64,000 nt of DNA, from assembly GCA_051530055.1 (NCBI GenBank), contig CM121342.1, positions 1 through 64,000 of the forward strand. Direction: 5' to 3'. This DNA is from Neoechinorhynchus agilis (lineage: Eukaryota > Animalia > Acanthocephala). The translations under genes and the position numbers were made by a program. This document shows positions 28,382-43,099 of this stretch, one piece after another. Under the pieces are notes generated by a model. That model saw only the letters and a program-made list of their open reading frames with translations, did not search any database and had not been told where the DNA came from. Positions within the stretch are counted from its first letter, which is position 1. Every line of letters begins with the position of its first letter.

Positions 28382-29232
28382 AAAAAATAGGCCTTCCGAT
28401 TTACGTTCGAAAATGTCTATTGGGTAGGAGGTCCTTCGAGTTGGGCATCTTTTTCAAGGAGCTGATTTCTGTATTCGAATTAAGGAGAGCGAGCAATTGC
28501 ATTCTTACTCCGGGATTAAGTGAACCTTTTTAAGATAAGGCGTAAGTTTGTCATCCTCCGCCGCAAAGTAAGCTTGCAAGTTTTTGAAACTAAGTCCTTT
28601 TTCACCAATCGTTCCATCTGGTTGAAAACAGATTTTATATGCTGCCAGCTTTACAAATCGATTATAAATTTTCATTCTGAGAAACTTAAAACTGACCCTT
28701 TAAATCAATAATGAATATTTTTCGTGGAATGCCTTTAAAAAAGAATAAAATCCATGAAAATTTAAAGACTTCGAGCAAGCAGACTACATTACTAATTGTC
28801 ACAAATTATTTCGATTAAAAAATGAAGATTAAAATTTAAACGTGCGCCAAATAATTTCACGGACTATATTTCTTCCGTTTTTTGTACATTGCAAATCGCC
28901 GTCTGTTTCTTATCGCTGCTTGTACATTCCGCGCATCGTTCTGTTGTGTTCGCTGATGAATTGAGCGATTTTGGAGCTGATGGTTTTTTGACCTTTGTAA
29001 TGAGGACCCGCGATAGCGCCTCTGAGTATCAATGAACGTGAGTAATTTTTTGAAAATAAATAGAAACTTATTTTCCACTATTAATGGAGGCTTCCGATCG
29101 GCGGAGAATATCTCTCTAAATCTCAAGAAACCTTGTATCTTGGATGGAGATTATTGTTGATTAGCTCATCCACCACGATCTCATACGCAGATGCCCTTCA
29201 CACCTGCGTTTTGACTGTGGCGTACTATTCAA
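28382..29232 (-). repeat. Repeat unit U, copy 3, headed by 34 nt of 28S downstream flank (29233-29266)
   Basis: On the minus strand: TAGCCAAATGCC...GTGACGTG, then TTGAATAGTACGCCACAGTCAAAACGCAGG..., ending GGCCTATTTTTTCT. Confidence 0.85.
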
Positions 29233-29234
29233 CA

Positions 29235-29266
<32 letters not shown>

Positions 29267-29772
29267 AGGTCGAATTTATTTGTTTATAACAAATAGGTGC
29301 TGTTACAATCTTTTTAATCTTTGGCTTGATTTCGTTCTTCGGTTGCTTTCGTGATTTTTCTTTTATTATTATTTTTTGAGCTGCTTAACAATTGTAAATT
29401 GTTTTCATGTCCCATATAATTGTTGTATGCTTGAATGGACTGCTCCGCTGCTGTTTGTGTCATGTTTAACGCGGTCTTTTTGGCTAAGTTGAACTCGCGT
29501 AATCTTTTCAATAGTGCCGGCGAGTACGTTTCTCTTCTTCCAACTGCTAACACAATAGTCTTAACGTCGTGTTTTTTAAATTGTATTGGGCCGCCACGTT
29601 CTCAACGATTACTTTGTACTTATTTTCCTTCTCGGCAATTATATTTTCCTCTCGCTCGCTTGTCGTTTCGTAATATACCGCGAAATCGATTATGTTTGCT
29701 TGCCATCAGCAGAACGTCATCGGCGTATACAAGATGCGACAGACGTACGTGTCCTTTAAGCTGAACACCTAT
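29267..29772 (-). mobile_element. R2-like element C, 3' part (RT YADD fused to RLE C-terminus, 3'UTR)
   Basis: GVQLKGHVRLSHLVYADDVLLMA joined directly to IIDFAVYYET...KTALNMTQTAAEQS; ends AATAAATTCGACCT|TAGCC. Confidence 0.88.
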
Positions 29773-30008
29773 CGTTGACATGGTGGATGAACCAAACAGC
29801 ATACCAGTTTTTCAACAAAACTGTTTTTGTACAACACACACTATTTTATGCCCATTTACGCTAGCCCAATCAATAGCGTACTTACCACATTTCCTCCCCC
29901 GCAAATTCCTAACCTATTTTGCGGTATTCGTCGTACGGCCGTATAGGAGGCCTCCGGCCCTGATTTCGTGACTTCACCTCCATCTTCTGCATTGAACTCT
30001 ACCTTCCT

Positions 30009-30782
30009 TTAAAGTTCTTCCTCTTCAACCTTTATGCTTACATTATCCTTTTCTTGTTCACATTCTTCGTAGTCTTCTTCCCTTTTCCTCACGAAATCCC
30101 CGTGCGCCCTATTTTGCGTTCCGTTTTTATCCACGATTCGATAGGACACCGGTCTTGATCGTTGATCCACGACTTCCTTTTGCGATTTCCCAGCTCTTCC
30201 TTTTTTCCACCACACTTCATTGCCTTCCCCAAACTCGCGATAACGCCCCTCCGGTCTCTGCCTCTGTCTTCGCGCTGTCCTGTCTCGCACTGTTTCCTCT
30301 GTATTTGGTCTGATATTGTCGAACACTGTATTCATCCTCCTCCCTAACATCATTTCTGCTGGAGTTTTTCCTGTGATTGCATGAGGCGTGTTTCGGTATG
30401 TTTGTAGAAATTCCGTAAGTGCCCTTCGAGTATCCATTCCTTCCCCTACCATTCCGCGTCGTTTAGGGGTTCCTATGAATCGTTCTACCAACCCATTCGT
30501 TTGTGGGTGGTAAGGACTCGCCTTTATGATCTCGATCCCATTTTCTTCGCAAAACGCCTTGAACTGTTGCGACATAAATTGAGGCCCGTTATCGCTCACA
30601 ATTTTCTTTGGAGTCCCGAATCGAGCAAATGTTTCCCTCATCCGATCGATCACCACTTCGGATGTTATTTTGCATGTATTGTAGAACCAAACCTCGGGCC
30701 ACTTACTCCTTGCATCTACGATCTCCAAATACATCTTGGAGTTTGTCGGTCCTGCCAAATCGTTGTGCACGCGCTCCCACAC
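30009..30782 (-). CDS. pol: Gypsy integrase core (fragment)
   Basis: VDARSKWPEV, SDNGPQF, SPYHPQTNGLVERF, YRNTPH. Confidence 0.9.
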   Translation of the reverse strand: MWERVHNDLAGPTNSKMYLEIVDARSKWPEVWFYNTCKITSEVVIDRMRETFARFGTPKKIVSDNGPQFMSQQFKAFCEENGIEIIKASPYHPQTNGLVERFIGTPKRRGMVGEGMDTRRALTEFLQTYRNTPHAITGKTPAEMMLGRRMNTVFDNIRPNTEETVRDRTARRQRQRPEGRYREFGEGNEVWWKKGRAGKSQKEVVDQRSRPVSYRIVDKNGTQNRAHGDFVRKREEDYEECEQEKDNVSIKVEEEEL

Positions 30783-30883
30783 TTCCGCCGGACAGTCCCA
30801 AGGTATAAGCGGCAGTTGTTGAATATTTGGTCGGGCTATTTGGCACCTTTCGCAACCTTCTACCTTCCGCCGTATGTCATCTT

Positions 30884-32797
30884 CTATACCGGGCCACCAT
30901 GCGTAATATCAGATAGAGCTTTTGTGCCTTCAATTCCTGGATGACCACGATGTAACATATCTAACACTTCCTTTCTCAGAGAAAATGGGATGACAATTCT
31001 TTGTAGGTGCATGACAATGCCGTTTTCGCAGGATAACTCATCTGCTCGGGCCGCGAACTGCCTGTCCGTATCGAGCATCGTTTTCGGCAATCCGAGCTGC
31101 AAATATCGTCCAATCCATACCAGTTGACGATCTTTAATCGATTCCGCTTTCAATCTTGATTTCGTTAAACCGCAAGCCTCCACCTTCTCCTCTTGCACCA
31201 TTCGTAGCGTTATTGTCTCCTCCTCTGAGTATTTCTGCTTTGGAGGGTCTACCGGAAATCTCGACAAAAAATCAGCACATTTGTTCTCGACCCCTTGAAC
31301 ATATTCGATCTCAAAGTCGTATTGATTCAAGAACAGGCCCCAGCGTACCAGTCGATTATTCGTCATCTTGGACAAATCTCTCCGCATTCCAAAAATATGC
31401 TTCAGGGGTTTGTAATCGGTCTCTAAGATGAATCGATGTCCATATAAGAATTGGTGGAACCTCTTGATCGAGCTGACGATTGCTAAAGCTTCCTTTTCTA
31501 TAGTCGCGTATTTCTTTTCCGCTGAGGTAAATGTCCGGGATACAAACATGATCGGTTCTTTGCTCCCATCTTCCTTCTTATGGAACAATCCCGCACCAAT
31601 TCCTTCTTCGCTTGCGTCGCATGTCAGCACAGTCATTCTTTTGATATCGAAAGGTACTAGGACCTTGTGATTTTGGACCGCTCGCTTTACTCCATCGAAG
31701 ATGTCCTTCTCATACTTTCCCCATTTCCACGGAACTCCTTGTTTCAGTAACGCATACAATCCCCTGCAGTGAGATTGCAATTCGGGAATGAAGCGTTCTA
31801 GATAGTTGACCATACCGATGAACGACTTAAGTTCTTTTTTATTTCGTGGGTATCGCGCCGACGTTATCGCAGTCACCTTTTCTCCTTGCGGTTTTATTTT
31901 CCCGTCTTCTAAGCTGTGCCCCAAATATCTCACCTGTGCTTCCATAAATCTACATTTATCTCTTTTGATGCCTATCCCTGCCTCCTCAAGTCGCTCGAGC
32001 ACTGCCTTTAAATTTTGGAGATGTTCTGCGTCATTCTTTCCGGAGATGATTATATCGTCGAGATAAGCTCCGGTACTTGGGATATCTATCAACAAATTGT
32101 CTATAAATTTCTGGAATATCTGCGGAGCGCAACTTAGTCCGAACAGCATCCTCCGGTACCGGAACAATCCCCATGGAGTCGATATATTTAGGAGTTTCCT
32201 ATGGTCGTCTGCCACCTCTAACTGCAAGTAAGCATCCGATAAATCAATAGTAGAGTACTTCTTGCCATTCCCCAATCTCTGTAGCATGTCGTCGAAAGTT
32301 GGCATATGATAGCTGTCCTGCCTTAAAGCTTTAATGACGGTGATTCTGAAATCCGCACAGATTCGTATTTGTCCATTACTTTTCTTCATGATGACCATAG
32401 GGGTTCCCCATTCTAAATTTGTGTCGCCTGTCTCCACTCGTTCCAATACCCCCTTGTTCGTCAATCGTTCCAATTCTTTAACTACCGCATCCTGTAATGC
32501 CCACGGCACTCTCCTCGCTGGTATCCACGTGGGCTGAGCACCGTCTGCAATCGGCAGTGTTACTCTGAAATTCCTGATGGGGGTACACTTCTCCTCGAAA
32601 AGTACTTTAAACTGTTTTAGCATCTCATCCACTGACTCCTGTACGGTTTTTATTCCCCTGACGATCACTGAAGGGGGTAACTCCATATCAAACAGCTTTA
32701 TCCAGTCAATCCCCCACAAACATCCCTTCGTTCCTTTTACCACGTGCACCGCTGTATTCTTCTTTATCCCTCTTGTTGTCGATTTCGGATCCTCCAA
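30884..32797 (-). CDS. pol: Gypsy RT-RNaseH (fragment)
   Basis: RICADFR, FGLSCAPQIFQ, YLDD, LTCDAS, ETDYKPL. Confidence 0.92.
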   Translation of the reverse strand: MEDPKSTTRGIKKNTAVHVVKGTKGCLWGIDWIKLFDMELPPSVIVRGIKTVQESVDEMLKQFKVLFEEKCTPIRNFRVTLPIADGAQPTWIPARRVPWALQDAVVKELERLTNKGVLERVETGDTNLEWGTPMVIMKKSNGQIRICADFRITVIKALRQDSYHMPTFDDMLQRLGNGKKYSTIDLSDAYLQLEVADDHRKLLNISTPWGLFRYRRMLFGLSCAPQIFQKFIDNLLIDIPSTGAYLDDIIISGKNDAEHLQNLKAVLERLEEAGIGIKRDKCRFMEAQVRYLGHSLEDGKIKPQGEKVTAITSARYPRNKKELKSFIGMVNYLERFIPELQSHCRGLYALLKQGVPWKWGKYEKDIFDGVKRAVQNHKVLVPFDIKRMTVLTCDASEEGIGAGLFHKKEDGSKEPIMFVSRTFTSAEKKYATIEKEALAIVSSIKRFHQFLYGHRFILETDYKPLKHIFGMRRDLSKMTNNRLVRWGLFLNQYDFEIEYVQGVENKCADFLSRFPVDPPKQKYSEEETITLRMVQEEKVEACGLTKSRLKAESIKDRQLVWIGRYLQLGLPKTMLDTDRQFAARADELSCENGIVMHLQRIVIPFSLRKEVLDMLHRGHPGIEGTKALSDITHGGPV

Positions 32798-34041
32798 ACG
32801 TCTTCAATCGCTTCGTCGCTTTCAAACTCGGCTTTCCGATCTTATTCCACATATCCTCGTCGATGATACTAACTTCCGCGCCAGCATCAAAATTCATTGT
32901 CACTTGACATCCATCGACCCTCGCCGTTATTTCTGCTCGATTACCTTCGTCATTTGCAGTGCAGATTAGCCCATAACAACCATAACCTTTCTTAAGTTCC
33001 CACTCATCCTCTCTAGGCTGCACTCCTTTTACAGCTTCTACTTGTCTCACCCCCGCTTTTCTACACATTCGGGCAAAATGTCCGCTAATACCACACTTGT
33101 AACATTTTCCTCTACTTGTCGGACATTGAACTTTATCTCGATGAACGAATCCGCACCTTCCACATCGATTACCGAACTTCTCTTTCGGTTCTTGTACTCG
33201 CTTATCCTCTGGTTTCCTTGTGAACCTTTGACTTCTTATTATTCGATCAACCTCGACCTCTCCTCTTTGATCCGAACGCTCGTTACTTTTTGAATCACAT
33301 AACAGCTCACTCGCCTTTTCTGCTACCTCGATCGCTTCGGCAATCTTTAAGACTTCCTCCAATGATGCTGAATCCTTGCCTTGCATCGCAGCTTTTCTTA
33401 AAGCTTTCAAAGGTGTCGCCACGATTATATGATCTTTAATATTTTCGTCGACCGCTGATCGTTCATCCTTAACTTCCTTGTTGTAGAAACCGCATCCTCG
33501 TGCAGCTCCTCGTAGTGCTGTAGCCCACTCGGCGTGAGTTTGTCCTTCTGCTTTACGGCATGTACTAAAGAGGTAGCGCGCCGTTATCTGGTGCATTGGC
33601 TGTGCTACGTATCTACATAGCTGACTTCGTCGAACGGTCGGCCGGCTACCTTGGATCCATCCAGGCCAATAGACAGGATCTACGCTTTTCTTCGTCGCTT
33701 TCTTTGATTCCATTGATTTCCATGTGGGCTTCGGCTTGTTCTACGTACTCGGCCCAGTTCTCGACTCCATCGAAAGTGCGGAATGGGGTTATCTGTGCTC
33801 CCCGTATCACATTTTTCTGTTCAATCTGGGCCTTGGACACCATTTTGAACATCTCTTCCATCCACACCTTTTGCTGTCCCATGATACCCTCCATCCATGT
33901 CTTCCATTTGTCCTCGTCGCCAGATGTTGACATGGTGGATGAACCAAACAGCAGACCAGTTTTTCAACAAAACTGTTTTTGTACATCACACACTATTTTA
34001 TGCCCATTAACGCTAGCGCAATCAATAGCGTACTTACCACA

Positions 34042-36474
34042 ATATCAAGCCTTCGAACTTCTTGCAATTCCTCGTCTAGACAACGCGAATAGCAAGGGGG
34101 AGAGGGGATCCACTTGCTTTACTCCTCTTCGGAAACTAATAGGGTCTGGCGTTGGGCATACGGATCTTCGTACTGCTTCCGCAGTAAGAGCTCATCACTT
34201 ATCTTTGCAGATAGTGAGGACACCCTATTTTACGAAGCGATTCCTCTATGGTAGCATGTGAAACAGTGTCAAAGGCACTCTTTATGTCGAGCACACCCAC
34301 CGCAAAAGGTATCCTGTTTGCCCGCTTTTCTTTAACAACACTACGAAGAGTTAGTGGATTAGCCATACATGCCGACGGGTCAAACGCCGTTTGTCCAGCG
34401 TCCAGACAGCATACTCTTCGAAGCCGCTTTAGAATGATGCGATGCAAGACACGCATCAAAATGGAGGAGATCGTAATCGGTCTCCAACCGGCCTGAATTT
34501 GCAGCGTTACCGGTGACGCACTTGATTTGGGCAACAGGATAGTTTTGGACTCATTCCACGATTGTGGCGGGCCTCCGTGTTGCATGACGAAGTTAAAGAG
34601 CAACGTCATACCCAGAAGTAACGGATCGAAGGCTCGAACATGTCGAACCGTTATCTTATCCGGACCCGATGCGCTTGAAGACTTAATGCTTTTGAGGGCA
34701 TCTTCGACTTCCACCGTTGTGATGACTGGCCAACGTTCCTCTGGAGACTGCTGTTGATCTGCAACAGTACTCTTTAGCAGACTCGCAGGTTGGACGTTCC
34801 CTTCAAATAGACGACGATAATGGTCAATTGTTTCTTGCGGATTCAGCTCATATTCCCTTCTCTCTGCATTTTTAAACACCTCAGCTGCAAGCTTCGGGGT
34901 GTTTTCAAAATCCAGGGCGCGATTTCGTCTCCTCTTGAGTCCACCGTCTTGGTATCTCGCAATACCGCGACATCCAACACATGGATAAATGCCGTATGCG
35001 TCGATCCACACGTTGTAAGCGTGTGTTCCAATCCCGGCACAAAAGATTCGACGCACTTGTCTTTCTAAAGGCGAATTTACCGAGAAATCACTTGAGTATA
35101 CTGGAGTGGCAGCGAACTAGGGGATACTACGCTATTCTTTAAAAGACCTCCAAGTTGGACTTCCAGAGACACGTTCGCGTCAAAGACGTTCTGTGCAACT
35201 TGGGCATATTATTCCTTGTTGTTTTGAACCTCCATTGTGACTTTCGTTACTACCTTCTTCCACAATGAAGGATTACCCAGTACGTGGTAGGCAATAGCGG
35301 TGAGAGCCTGAGTCAGACCTTTCCTGAGCTTAATGATCTTAAGGCCTAATTCTCGCGCTACAGAGACTTGAGGCACCTCGTTACTCCGATCACATCGCAA
35401 GTACTGAGCATATCGCATAGTCGCCGCATTGACAAATTCACCATTAATGGAACCTTCCGATTGACGGAGGATATCTCGCTCCGTCTCAAGAAAACCTCTG
35501 TACCTTGGATGGAGATTATTCTTGTTCAGCACGTCAACAACACTTTCATACGCCTCGACCACTGTAAAGACAGTCGACTTGATAGAACAGTCTGCCATTG
35601 TGGTGCCCCCTTCACACCGGCGTCTTGACTGTGGCGTATGATTTTCATGCAAGAACTGGCGTTGCGTTTCCATGCCACCTACAAGGGTAGGTGAGCGGAT
35701 AGAAGGGCTTTCTTCGTTTAATACCTCTGGAGGTTCGCGTTCCTCCTCGCTGACCAGCTCGTTGACCGATTGCTCTGTAGGCGGATCCATTCTGTCGTTT
35801 CTTTCACTTTCCTGATTATTGGCCACGGATGAAGCCGCATCCCGTCTACATTTGCAGACATTCATGTGGCCCCGGACAGACACATAATTGTCCGACCTGT
35901 ATGCCGAACACGCCGGGCATTGATACAACACTGATGTTGATCCGTGTTCGTGCATAAGGTGGTCCTTCAAGACTTTGGTCCGGTTACTCCCGTGGAATGT
36001 GGCGTAGCATTCTGAGCATTCCACGGGTCCCTCTGGCTCTTTGTTAGCGATGATAAGGCCACCTTTCCCTGCTAAAGGGGCCACTTTTACGACTGTCTCT
36101 TCATCAAATAGGGCTGCTGCCTTTGGCGGGTTCTTTTTGGAGCACGTCTTAAAGTGTAGGCCAATTGAACAGATGGACTCCTTCGTCAGTCCACATACAC
36201 CACACATCCATTCCACAGCCTGCTTGTGGAATGATGTCATGTGCTCGCTAATCAGTCTCACTTTCGTCTTTCCGGTAAATATCACTTTCGGCTTGCAATC
36301 TGGGCATTCAATACATTCCTGATGGACCCGATGGTACTGCAGGTATACTTTTGCATGCCGTTGTTCACGCGTTGGTCTTTGGTTATCGCCATCTAGAATT
36401 AGGAGCGCCAAGTCCTCGGTGGGAGGGGGTGTATCCGATGACTCGTCGTCAATTATTTGGTTTCTTTCAGAAGA
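34042..36474 (-). mobile_element. R2-like element C, 5' part (four zinc fingers, OTU-like segment, RT domains)
   Basis: 5' junction TAACTATGACT|TCTTCTG; ORFs 35209-36492 and 34199-35056. The RT reading RRLD-I-GVQLKG resumes at 29772 across the gypsy insertion. Confidence 0.93.
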
Positions 36475-36527
36475 AGTCATAGTTACGTCCACCGTTTACC
36501 CGCGCTTAAATTAATTTCTTCACTTTA

Positions 36528-36558
<31 letters not shown>

Positions 36559-40791: not shown

Positions 40792-41643
40792 AAATAGGCC
40801 TTCCGATTTACGTTTGAAAATGTCTATTGGATAGAAGGTCCTTCGAGTTGTACATCCTTTTCAAGGAGCTGATTTCTGTATTCAAATTAAGGAGAGCGAG
40901 CAATTGCATTCTTACTCCGGGATTAAGTGAACCCTTTTAAGATAGGATGTCCGTTTGTCATTCTCCGTTGCATAGTTAGCTTGCTATTTTTTAAAACTAA
41001 GTCCTTCTTCACCAAATCGTTCCATCTGGTTGGAAACATATTTTATATGCTGCCAGCTTTACAAATCGGTTATAAATTTTCATTCGGGGAAACTTAAAAC
41101 TGCACTTTAATTCAGCAATGAACATCTTTCATGGAATACCTAAAAAAGGAATAAAATCCATGATAATTTAAAGACTTCGAGCAAGCAGACTACATTACTA
41201 ATTGTCACAAATTATTTCGATTAAAAAATGAAGATTAAAATTTAAACGTGCGCCAAATAATTTCACAGACTATATTTCTTCCGTTTTTTGTACATTGCAA
41301 ATCGCCGTCTGTTTCTTATCGCTGCTTGTACATTCCGCGCATCGCTCTGTTTTGTTCGCTGATGAATTGAGCGATTTTGAATCTGATTGTTTGTTTTAAC
41401 CTTTTTTCCGAGGACCCGTGATGGCACCTTGGAGCATCAATGAACGTGACTAATTTTTTGAAAATAATTCTAAACGTGTTTTGCCGTATCGATGGAGGCT
41501 TCCGATCGGCAGAGAATATCTCTCTAAATCTCAGGAAAACTTCTGTACCTTGGATGGAGATTATTGATGATTAGCTCATCCACCACGATCTCAGACGCAG
41601 ATGCCCCTTCACACCTGCGTTTTGACTGTGGCGTATGATTCAA
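40792..41643 (-). repeat. Repeat unit U, copy 4, headed by 34 nt of 28S downstream flank (41644-41677)
   Basis: Same head and same GGCCTATTTTTTCT end as copy 3. Confidence 0.85.
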
Positions 41644-41677
41644 AACGTCACCAATTGGATGACGAGGCATTTGGCTA

Positions 41678-43034
41678 GGCATGCATTTATTTTGGAGATA
41701 TGCTGTTTCACACGGGTTTAATACTTCATCAATTTTTTTCCATATTTCTTTATAGCTGATTTTTCATTTATTTGAATTGTGTTCCATGCATTTTATTCTC
41801 AGGCCCAGGGCAAAAAATTCGTCGTTCGTTCTTATCGAAGGGGGTGTTGACCGTGAAATCGCAGGAGTATGCTGCGACAGCAGCACCGAGGTGAACTTCC
41901 AGTAGTACATTCGCGTCCGAGACGCTAAGTGCAACGTTTTGATAGTACTCCATGTTGCTCTGTACCTCCGTTAAGGTCTTCGAAGATACCTTTCTCCATA
42001 ACGAAGGGTTACCTAGTACATGGTAAGCGATCGCACAGAGTAACTGACGAGGACCTCTGCTCAGCTTAATGATCCTCAGGCCCATCTCCCTCGCTCTGGA
42101 GGTAGTAGGCACTTCAGTGCTACGCAGGCAGCACAAGTACTGTTCATACCGCGACGCTGCCGCATCCACAAAATCACCATTCGGTGGACCTTCCTTGTGT
42201 CTTAAGACACGTCCCTCGTTCTCGAGGTGACTGCGCTGTCGAGGATGTAAATCCTCTTTACCGAGAACCTCGGTAATAAACTCGTACGCCTCGGCAACAG
42301 TAAAAACTGTTGGCTCGACAAAACAGTCAAGTGCATAAGTATCGCATTCACTCGTAGCACAAGACTGTAGCGTACTCATCATGGAGCTTTCATGGCCGGC
42401 CGGTTCCACGTCACCTGCAAAGCCAGCTGATTCTTGGTCAGAGGGGAGGCGTCCGTCTTGATCATTGATTAGTTCGATTGCGTTATCCTCCATAGACTGA
42501 GGTTGGCTGATCTCAACATGTTCAACATGTTCCACATTATTTGGCTCGCCACTTGCTCACACGGCATTGCTTGCACTCAAGCGGCCCATCAGTTTCCTTC
42601 GTTGCAATGACAAGTCCGTGTTTTCCTGAAATGGGCGCGACTTTGACAATTGTGTTTTCGTAAATTTAGGCCTTCGTCTTTGCCGGTTGTCGAATAGATC
42701 ATGTCTTAAAATGAAGTCCGATTGAGCCGATCGAATCGTTTCTTAAACCACAGATGCCACACCCGTCCTACAGCTTGCTTGTGCTTCTTATTCATATGAT
42801 CACTTATCAATTTGATTTTGGATTTTCCAGTCAACACCATGGAAGGCTCGCATTGTTGACATTTGAAAAGTTCCTGGAATGACCGATGATATGGTAAATA
42901 GACTTTGTCCGGCTTTTGTTGTTCACGCGGTGAAGATTGAGGCAGTTAATGCGCGTCATCTGCAATGGGAAGCGCACAGTCGCCGGTGGATTGGGGAGTA
43001 AAATTTGACTTGTTTGTTGTCGGTTTTTTGGAAA
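41678..43034 (-). mobile_element. R2-like element D: 1357-bp internally deleted derivative with both ends (no RT or RLE)
   Basis: ~30-nt 28S leader (43035-43064) ending TAACTACGACT|; zinc-finger and OTU-like coding; RRIFCPG joined to a ~100-nt 3'UTR ending AATAAATGCATGCC|TAGCC. Confidence 0.87.
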
Positions 43035-43099
43035 AGTCGTAGTTACATCTTCCGTTTACCCGCGTGCTTTTAGGTTTTTAAATACAGTCCCTTATTAGG

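Follow-up and report, generated by a model that had tools for sequence, protein, structure and literature searches.

R2 retrotransposons of Neoechinorhynchus agilis with a reading frame that opens inside the host 28S rRNA leader and a possible start at a host AUG

The R2 elements of the acanthocephalan Neoechinorhynchus agilis described here have no 5′UTR of their own. As had been predicted, the ORF in these lineages opens inside the 28S rRNA sequence to which the element is joined. We have high confidence that this arrangement of junction and ORF is genuine. In two lineages, C and G, the ORF is in frame with an ATG of the host 28S rRNA gene, located in helix 69. Judged from the sequence, the 28S AUG may well be the initiation codon in these two lineages, making the first two codons, Met-Thr, rRNA; we consider this plausible but somewhat short of probable.

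The stretch of DNA analyzed, referred to as the window, comprises positions 1 to 64,000 of N. agilis contig CM121342.1. It consists of degenerate rDNA (pieces of 18S, 5.8S, and 28S) with many retroelements, including nested insertions. Four R2 copies, A to D, are each joined to 28S directly after ...TAACTATGACT. A 26-nt 28S pattern (GGTAAACGG..GTAACTA(T/C)GACT) occurs four times in the window while no occurrence is expected by chance, and R2-type sequence lies directly 3′ of all four. Copy A (5140..5300, plus strand; junction 5169/5170) is 5′-truncated and begins inside the reverse transcriptase (RT), with the same join position after ACT. Full-length 5′ ends were found in copy B (junction 11485/11486, plus strand), copy C (36475/36474, minus strand), and copy D (43035/43034, minus strand). 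Homologous sequence begins no more than about 50 nt past the 28S junction. The distance from the 28S ATG to the common ACC codon of TE[N/D]LALL is 55 nt in B, 60 nt in C, and 53 nt in D, which agrees with the original prediction modulo 3. The claim that three full-length ends join at TAACTA(T/C)GACT was confirmed, with zero chance matches expected. That all three are joined to 28S held for B and C, but the “28S” ahead of D is an internalized and mutated leader of 30 nt, not the 28S gene. None of the window copies is intact.

The elements are R2-type 28S-specific non-LTR retrotransposons. Their nearest database proteins are R2-like RT proteins, copy B contains an RVT_1 domain (E 9e-33), and the translations display zinc fingers and C-terminal CCHC and restriction-like endonuclease motifs, the single-ORF R2 layout. 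A Myb domain had no Pfam match in the N-terminal parts. The 3′ junctions lie at the conserved 28S R2 site before TAGCC, both in the window (copy B, 15699/15700; another copy, 56124/56125) and in lineage G (locus L004, 6744/6745).

Copy C presents the arrangement most clearly. Its 30-nt 28S leader (36475..36504, minus strand, as are all copy C features) holds both an in-frame TAA (36498-36496), which closes the frame five codons upstream, and the helix-69 ATG (36478..36480). The N-terminal ORF (35209..36492), encoding zinc fingers and an OTU-like region, is 427 codons long from a GTG and 423 codons long from the 28S ATG, so the predicted in-frame relation with a long ORF was borne out. No other ATG is found ahead of the next in-frame Met, codon 81, which is already within zinc finger 1. 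An RT-proximal ORF piece (34199..35056) is off-frame relative to the N-terminal piece in this copy, while both are in one frame in an RNA-library contig. Copy C is damaged by in-frame stops, a short deletion, and the insertion of an LTR element. The inserted element is a Gypsy-type LTR retrotransposon with gag, protease, RT/RNase H, and integrase ORFs (about 29100-34150, minus strand) that splits copy C; a second Gypsy-type element lies behind copy B (about 16188-18817, plus strand).

Reads were placed on positions 34150-36530, with a 28S flank of 56 nt. The data were raw genomic reads (X8), contigs that are probably DNA (X1), and contigs that are probably RNA (X2 and X3). Lineage C reaches a read depth of several hundred-fold. 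Most of its reads are 90–99% like copy C, which is thus one diverged representative of an abundant family. Between the 28S ATG and position 35700, the best-supported indels in X8 are both of 3 nt: a loss at 36469 (214/283 reads, and all RNA-library contigs) and a gain at 35700 (545/703 reads). Two contigs from the RNA libraries span the 28S/R2 junction: X2 record 10, which is 2019 nt long and includes 27 nt of 28S, and X3 record 21. The former differs in length from copy C only by the 3-nt loss, the 3-nt gain, and 10 extra letters at 35102-35117. These 16 gap letters (3+3+10) bring the zinc-finger ORF, with the 28S ATG, and the RT ORF into one frame. The 3-nt indels and the frame of this contig thus make the in-frame relation a property of lineage C and not of a single copy. 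Alignment of the 5′ junctions in reads, the check attached to the original prediction, accordingly found most lineage C copies in frame, with indels near the 5′ end of 3 nt. Furthermore, 20 of the 39 listed differences between the majority form and copy C are synonymous, which indicates that lineage C diverged under selection.

Several other features of the reads were considered and set aside. Ends of RNA contigs at 36501 were rejected as an RNA 5′ end; they are best read as an assembly branch point, because 27 nt of 28S and 4 lineage-distinguishing nt make up the 31-mer of the assembler (k=31). Short 28S contigs carry adapter directly at 36500 in X2 and X3, and at 36487 and 36483 in one run each. 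The ends at 36500 were not accepted as an upstream cleavage product, given the similar adapter ends at 36483 and 36487 and the extreme depth of rRNA; the adapter-bearing ends may be ends of abundant fragments or reflect an rRNA break near helix 69. In five further lineages, seen as loose read ends, the first 10 codons are stop-free, which is uninformative, as stops are nearly absent from all three frames of this A/C-rich sequence. A word-indexed protein search for intact C-lineage N-termini returned nothing, and an exhaustive protein search returned only fragments and other lineages.

The same exhaustive approach yielded the relatives of these elements: lineage G, elements of Pomphorhynchus laevis, and more distant loci. 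Lineage G (P0060; GenBank “hypothetical protein ACOME3_004666”, N. agilis CM121342.1) lies behind complete upstream 28S, with the same 5′ junction, at locus L004. Its ORF (2989..5904, with the ATG at 3001) has 971 codons from a leader GTG and 967 from the 28S ATG, and begins MTFPK. The GenBank model (L004:3001-5904) already starts at the 28S ATG, such that its first two codons, Met-Thr, are 28S rRNA. Lineages G and C are only about 29% identical and differ in the 79-residue stretch before zinc finger 1; both are in frame. Lineage G has a further in-frame Met at codon 17. It is damaged too: its RT carries a deletion, and the frame shifts after codon 967.

Decay has affected copies B and D, neither of which is in frame. 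In the 28S leader of copy B (11456..11485, plus strand), the ATG (11480-11482) is off the coding frame by +1. Copy B (11486..15699, plus strand) has a zinc-finger region broken by two stops, followed by a 1113-codon ORF (12254-15595) with RVT_1 and a 3′ junction before TAGCC. Copy B also has an ATG of its own at element position +2 (11487-11489, plus strand), in the TENLALL coding frame, whose ATGAC sits 7 nt past the ATGAC of 28S. A TAG follows this ATG inside the segment antisense to 28S (window 11487-11520, plus strand); the complement of CUAUG contains UAG. Upstream of copy D lie the internalized 30-nt leader, in which the ATG has become ACG, and a 21-nt spacer with a AAAAACCTAAAAGCA motif (together 43035..43085, minus strand). 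The decayed 5′ part of copy D (41492..43034, minus strand) carries stops and has its coding frame shifted by -1 from the position of the leader ATG. In this coding frame the leader of copy D, from AACTACGAC, reads N-Y-D (window 43035-43046, minus strand). Two P. laevis R2 proteins begin M-F/L-N-Y-D (L007:1501-1515 and L008:1501-1515), and their N-Y-D codons differ from those of the copy D leader only synonymously (AAC/AAT, TAT/TAC, GAC/GAT). This hints that a 28S-derived stretch may be translated in a second frame in some lineages.

The prediction of an in-frame 28S ATG therefore held for most lineage C copies and for lineage G (967 codons), but not for B (+1) or D (-1). One of three window copies in frame equals the chance expectation, so that any significance comes only from the added reads and relatives. 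When C, G, B, and D are taken together, two of four are in frame, which is not significant. For both lineages with long open frames, C and G, to be in frame has a chance of 1 in 9.

In P. laevis, three loci (L007, L009, and L010; GenBank KAI0985678.1 and KAI0989611.1) have the junction as in N. agilis, after ACTATGACT. The 5′ ends of the three contigs are identical, which indicates recent R2 activity in the clade. The 28S ATG shares the ORF frame here too, with a fixed TAA at codon 59, after 58 codons. For the annotated ORF, the start is an ATG of the element itself, which follows the 28S ATG by 198 nt and stands behind a 192-nt 5′UTR. The 5′UTR-less design is thus upheld for the N. agilis lineages but does not extend to this relative. 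Over the 192 nt, the frame of the 28S AUG has one stop vs. two and four in the other frames; by shuffling, the probability of at most one stop is 0.09. In L001, L002, L003, and L007, a stop is followed by 7–31 codons, the first ATG, and then zinc finger 1. The upstream stops of the distant relatives L001, L002, and L003 are genuine and their first ATG comes 12–31 codons later; since these elements begin at the first ATG after a stop, AUG starts look like the rule in this R2 clade. The equivalent stop and first AUG of C and G both belong to the host 28S. The MSSS... start of P0059 (L003) was considered as a homologue of the 28S-ATG start and is suggestive only, the region having no alignment to B, C, or D.

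The same 5′ junction recurs in B, C, and G and in the copies from P. laevis. In contrast to this uniformity, 5′-truncated C copies join 28S at 36480, 36483, 36484, 36485, 36487, and 36497, often with extra letters. In the reads, some copies have an additional, internal 28S leader, starting at 36504 (the commonest), 36499, or 36491. Uniform full-length junctions, variable truncated ones, and leader duplications are the pattern tied to R2 RNA that is cut upstream in 28S (PMC3774820). The upstream cut is typically at -28 and at most at -36, so the 28S leader stays on the RNA (PMC3774820). Taken together, the junctions and internal leaders suggest that the mobile R2 RNA of N. agilis carries a 28S leader of about 30 nt that includes the AUG. 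The retained leader of about 28 nt in other R2s already holds the helix-69 AUG, without using it (PMC3774820).

The internalized leaders mostly begin right after UUUAAG. They are preceded by a recurrent AAAAACTTACAAGCA-like spacer (window 43065-43085, minus strand; genomic reads at 36474-36504), which is similar to the opening 18 nt of D/E-type elements and, loosely, to the spliced leader of bdelloid rotifers. Joins farther upstream in 28S, which exclude the 28S ATG, occur in N. agilis after GGTGGAC (L005:2440-2520) and in P. laevis after GGCGGAAG (L008:1040-1070); these look like variant or truncated junctions.

On the element side of the junction, the first 9–10 nt resemble positions -9..-1 of 28S (CTCTTAAGG) with lineage-specific changes (L007:1300-1320; 36465-36474, minus strand; L004:3007-3016). 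The Rfam alignment of the P. laevis junction likewise shows the opening 9–10 nt of the “element” to be 28S -9..-1 in diverged form. What appears to be a 9-bp deletion of the target may be 28S sequence re-templated downstream of the top-strand nick. If so, the top-strand nick lies about 9 nt upstream of the bottom-strand nick.

The original prediction also stated that any ribozyme would have to overlap the ORF or the leader, or be absent, and proposed a search for an HDV fold around the junctions. This search gave no support for a ribozyme: around the junctions of B, C, G, and P. laevis no HDV-type or other ribozyme family matched in Rfam at E up to 10, and shuffled sequences matched an HDV-topology descriptor as often as the real ones did. 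An HDV-like fold with P1 CGGUGG:CCACCG, P3 (GGA:UCC, AUU:AAU, AGU:AUU), and P2 GUCAUC:GAUGGC could be constructed for C and D but not for B or G. It was not accepted as evidence, also because it has no L3 G and equally good matches occur in 17–94% of shuffles, depending on the descriptor. In these decayed copies, the candidate L3 loops (UACACCCCC, UAUCUUCCC, and UUACUCCCC) contain no G that could be the conserved guanosine, and the candidate for the catalytic C of J4/2 has no fixed position, being in different columns in C vs. D and absent in B. The pairing CGGUGG:CCACCG (CUACCG in B), at the position of P1 in known R2 ribozymes, is kept in B, C, D, and G.

Just one RNA module is conserved, and it overlaps the ORF, as had been predicted. 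It is an antisense copy of the 28S leader at element positions +27..+75, kept in B, C, D, and G. In copy C it occupies 36400..36448 (minus strand) and codes for TEDLALL; its pairing with the leader takes in the AUG. RNAalifold paired 21 positions of 28S (-31..-4) with the module, and the AUG was paired in 3–4 of the 4 sequences. Single-sequence folding gave z values of -3.0 for B, -1.8 for G, -0.4 for C, and -0.5 for D. The reading frame of the module differs between C and G, which places the constraint on it at the RNA level.

The best overall explanation, which we judge to be only just short of an even call, is a 5′UTR-less R2 whose ORF opens after the 28S TAA, whose RNA retains the leader, and whose translation starts at the 28S AUG. 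According to this model, the element is presumably co-transcribed with 28S, and the processed mobile RNA would keep about 30 nt of 28S leader, as in upstream-cleaving R2s, so each new copy would again stand behind a host-encoded stop and AUG. Each insertion would re-template the first 9–10 nt of the “element”, as diverged 28S -9..-1. The ORF of C and G runs in frame from the helix-69 AUG via about 55–80 poorly conserved codons into the zinc fingers, and its nucleotides +27 to +75, antisense to upstream 28S, are predicted to fold back and cover the AUG. More tentatively, and as a rather doubtful possibility, this would be an R2 family that owns neither a 5′UTR nor a start codon: its insertions would be placed so that the host stop and the AUG of the helix-69 loop head the ORF, its first 75 nt would act as an antisense clamp controlling 5′ processing and access to the AUG, and its protein would begin with two rRNA-encoded residues.

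A start at the 28S AUG has to be weighed against a reading in which the ORF is merely open to the 5′ end, translation begins without an AUG or internally, driven by RNA structure, and the in-frame AUG in C and G is incidental. We regard this as a substantial possibility, though well below even. R2 proteins have been described as translated without an obligatory Met codon, by an unknown mechanism and from a position that cannot be deduced (PMC13580325, PMC13188248), and a role for the ribozyme fold in promoting cap-independent initiation is presumed (PMC12203849). Within the present material the same reading is favored by the out-of-frame copies B and D, by the 58-codon upstream frame from the 28S AUG that P. 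laevis tolerates, and by the usual 28-nt leader of other R2s, which has the same AUG and leaves it unused (PMC3774820). The 28S AUG itself is predicted to be held in a stable helix, and its context is weak (C at -3). Against an incidental AUG, the close relatives all start at the first ATG after a stop, both long-frame lineages are in frame (1 in 9), and the lineage C indels near the junction are multiples of three.

It could also be argued that all examined copies are dead relics whose 5′ frame relations are drift and have no bearing on translation. Indeed, none of the copies read from end to end (C, G, B, and D) is free of defects, and the setting is degenerate rDNA with nested insertions. 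This is nonetheless unlikely, as lineage C reaches several hundred-fold depth, has a majority form that is coherent, occurs in the RNA-library contigs, and has an excess of synonymous differences, while the three identical P. laevis 5′ ends point to recent activity in the clade. Least probable, in our view, is that the 5′ end is made by something other than a ribozyme, either by cutting at an AG 30 nt upstream of the junction (e.g., spliced-leader trans-splicing) or by a double-strand RNase acting on the leader/antisense duplex. Trans-splicing would yield a capped mRNA with the 28S AUG as its first AUG. The ribozyme searches that found none fit such a process, as does the commonest start of internalized leaders (36504), directly after UUUAAG, and the recurrent AAAAACTTACAAGCA-like motif before the leaders is loosely like the 3′ half of the bdelloid rotifer spliced leader (PMC3795323). 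However, that spacer is also like the first 18 nt of D/E-type elements and may be a partial 5′-end duplication, the leader starts at 36499 and 36491 do not follow an AG, and a spliced leader is not known for acanthocephalans.

The N. agilis elements share much with the upstream-cleaving R2s of silkmoth (R2Bm), earwig, Nasonia giraulti, planaria, and zebra finch: insertion at the R2 site of 28S, co-transcription, a 28S leader of about 28 nt (36 at most) that stays on the RNA and includes the AUG, uniform full-length 5′ junctions with occasional tandem or internalized leader duplications, and an element segment that pairs with 28S at -29/-28 (PMC3774820). In those R2s, a 5′UTR of hundreds of nucleotides with a demonstrable ribozyme lies between leader and ORF (PMC3774820), whereas in N. 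agilis the ORF adjoins the leader and in two lineages is in frame with the leader AUG. The complementarity to 28S is about 34 nt in N. agilis, vs. a 7-bp P1 in the upstream-cleaving R2s, and an HDV-like core is not demonstrable. The R2 ORFs of Drosophila and others that have no Met are also alike in that, as George and Eickbush (1999) are summarized in PMC13580325 and PMC13188248, the ORF extends far upstream of the first zinc finger and its start is undefined and assumed to be cap-independent. The Drosophila ribozyme removes all 28S, leaving no host AUG, while in N. agilis the host AUG is the first AUG of the ORF. The P. laevis R2 belongs to the same protein clade (paired zinc fingers, OTU-like region, and RT) and shares the junction, the first 9 nt as diverged 28S -9..-1, a CUACCG-type segment complementary to 28S, and the 28S ATG in the ORF frame. 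It differs in the fixed TAA after 58 codons and in the element-encoded ATG behind the 192-nt 5′UTR.

Since 1999 it has been asked how R2 protein is made from an RNA that is excised from a Pol I transcript and bears no cap, and reviews call the mechanism unknown and the N-terminus undeducible. Lineages C and G provide a natural case in which a host rRNA AUG stands a few codons past a host stop, and copy C has no other AUG before the DNA-binding domain. The antisense module shows a copy of the target serving as an RNA element within coding sequence, in a frame that differs by lineage. For annotation, pipelines call R2 ORFs from the rRNA ATG, and the GenBank N. agilis model already starts with two 28S codons.
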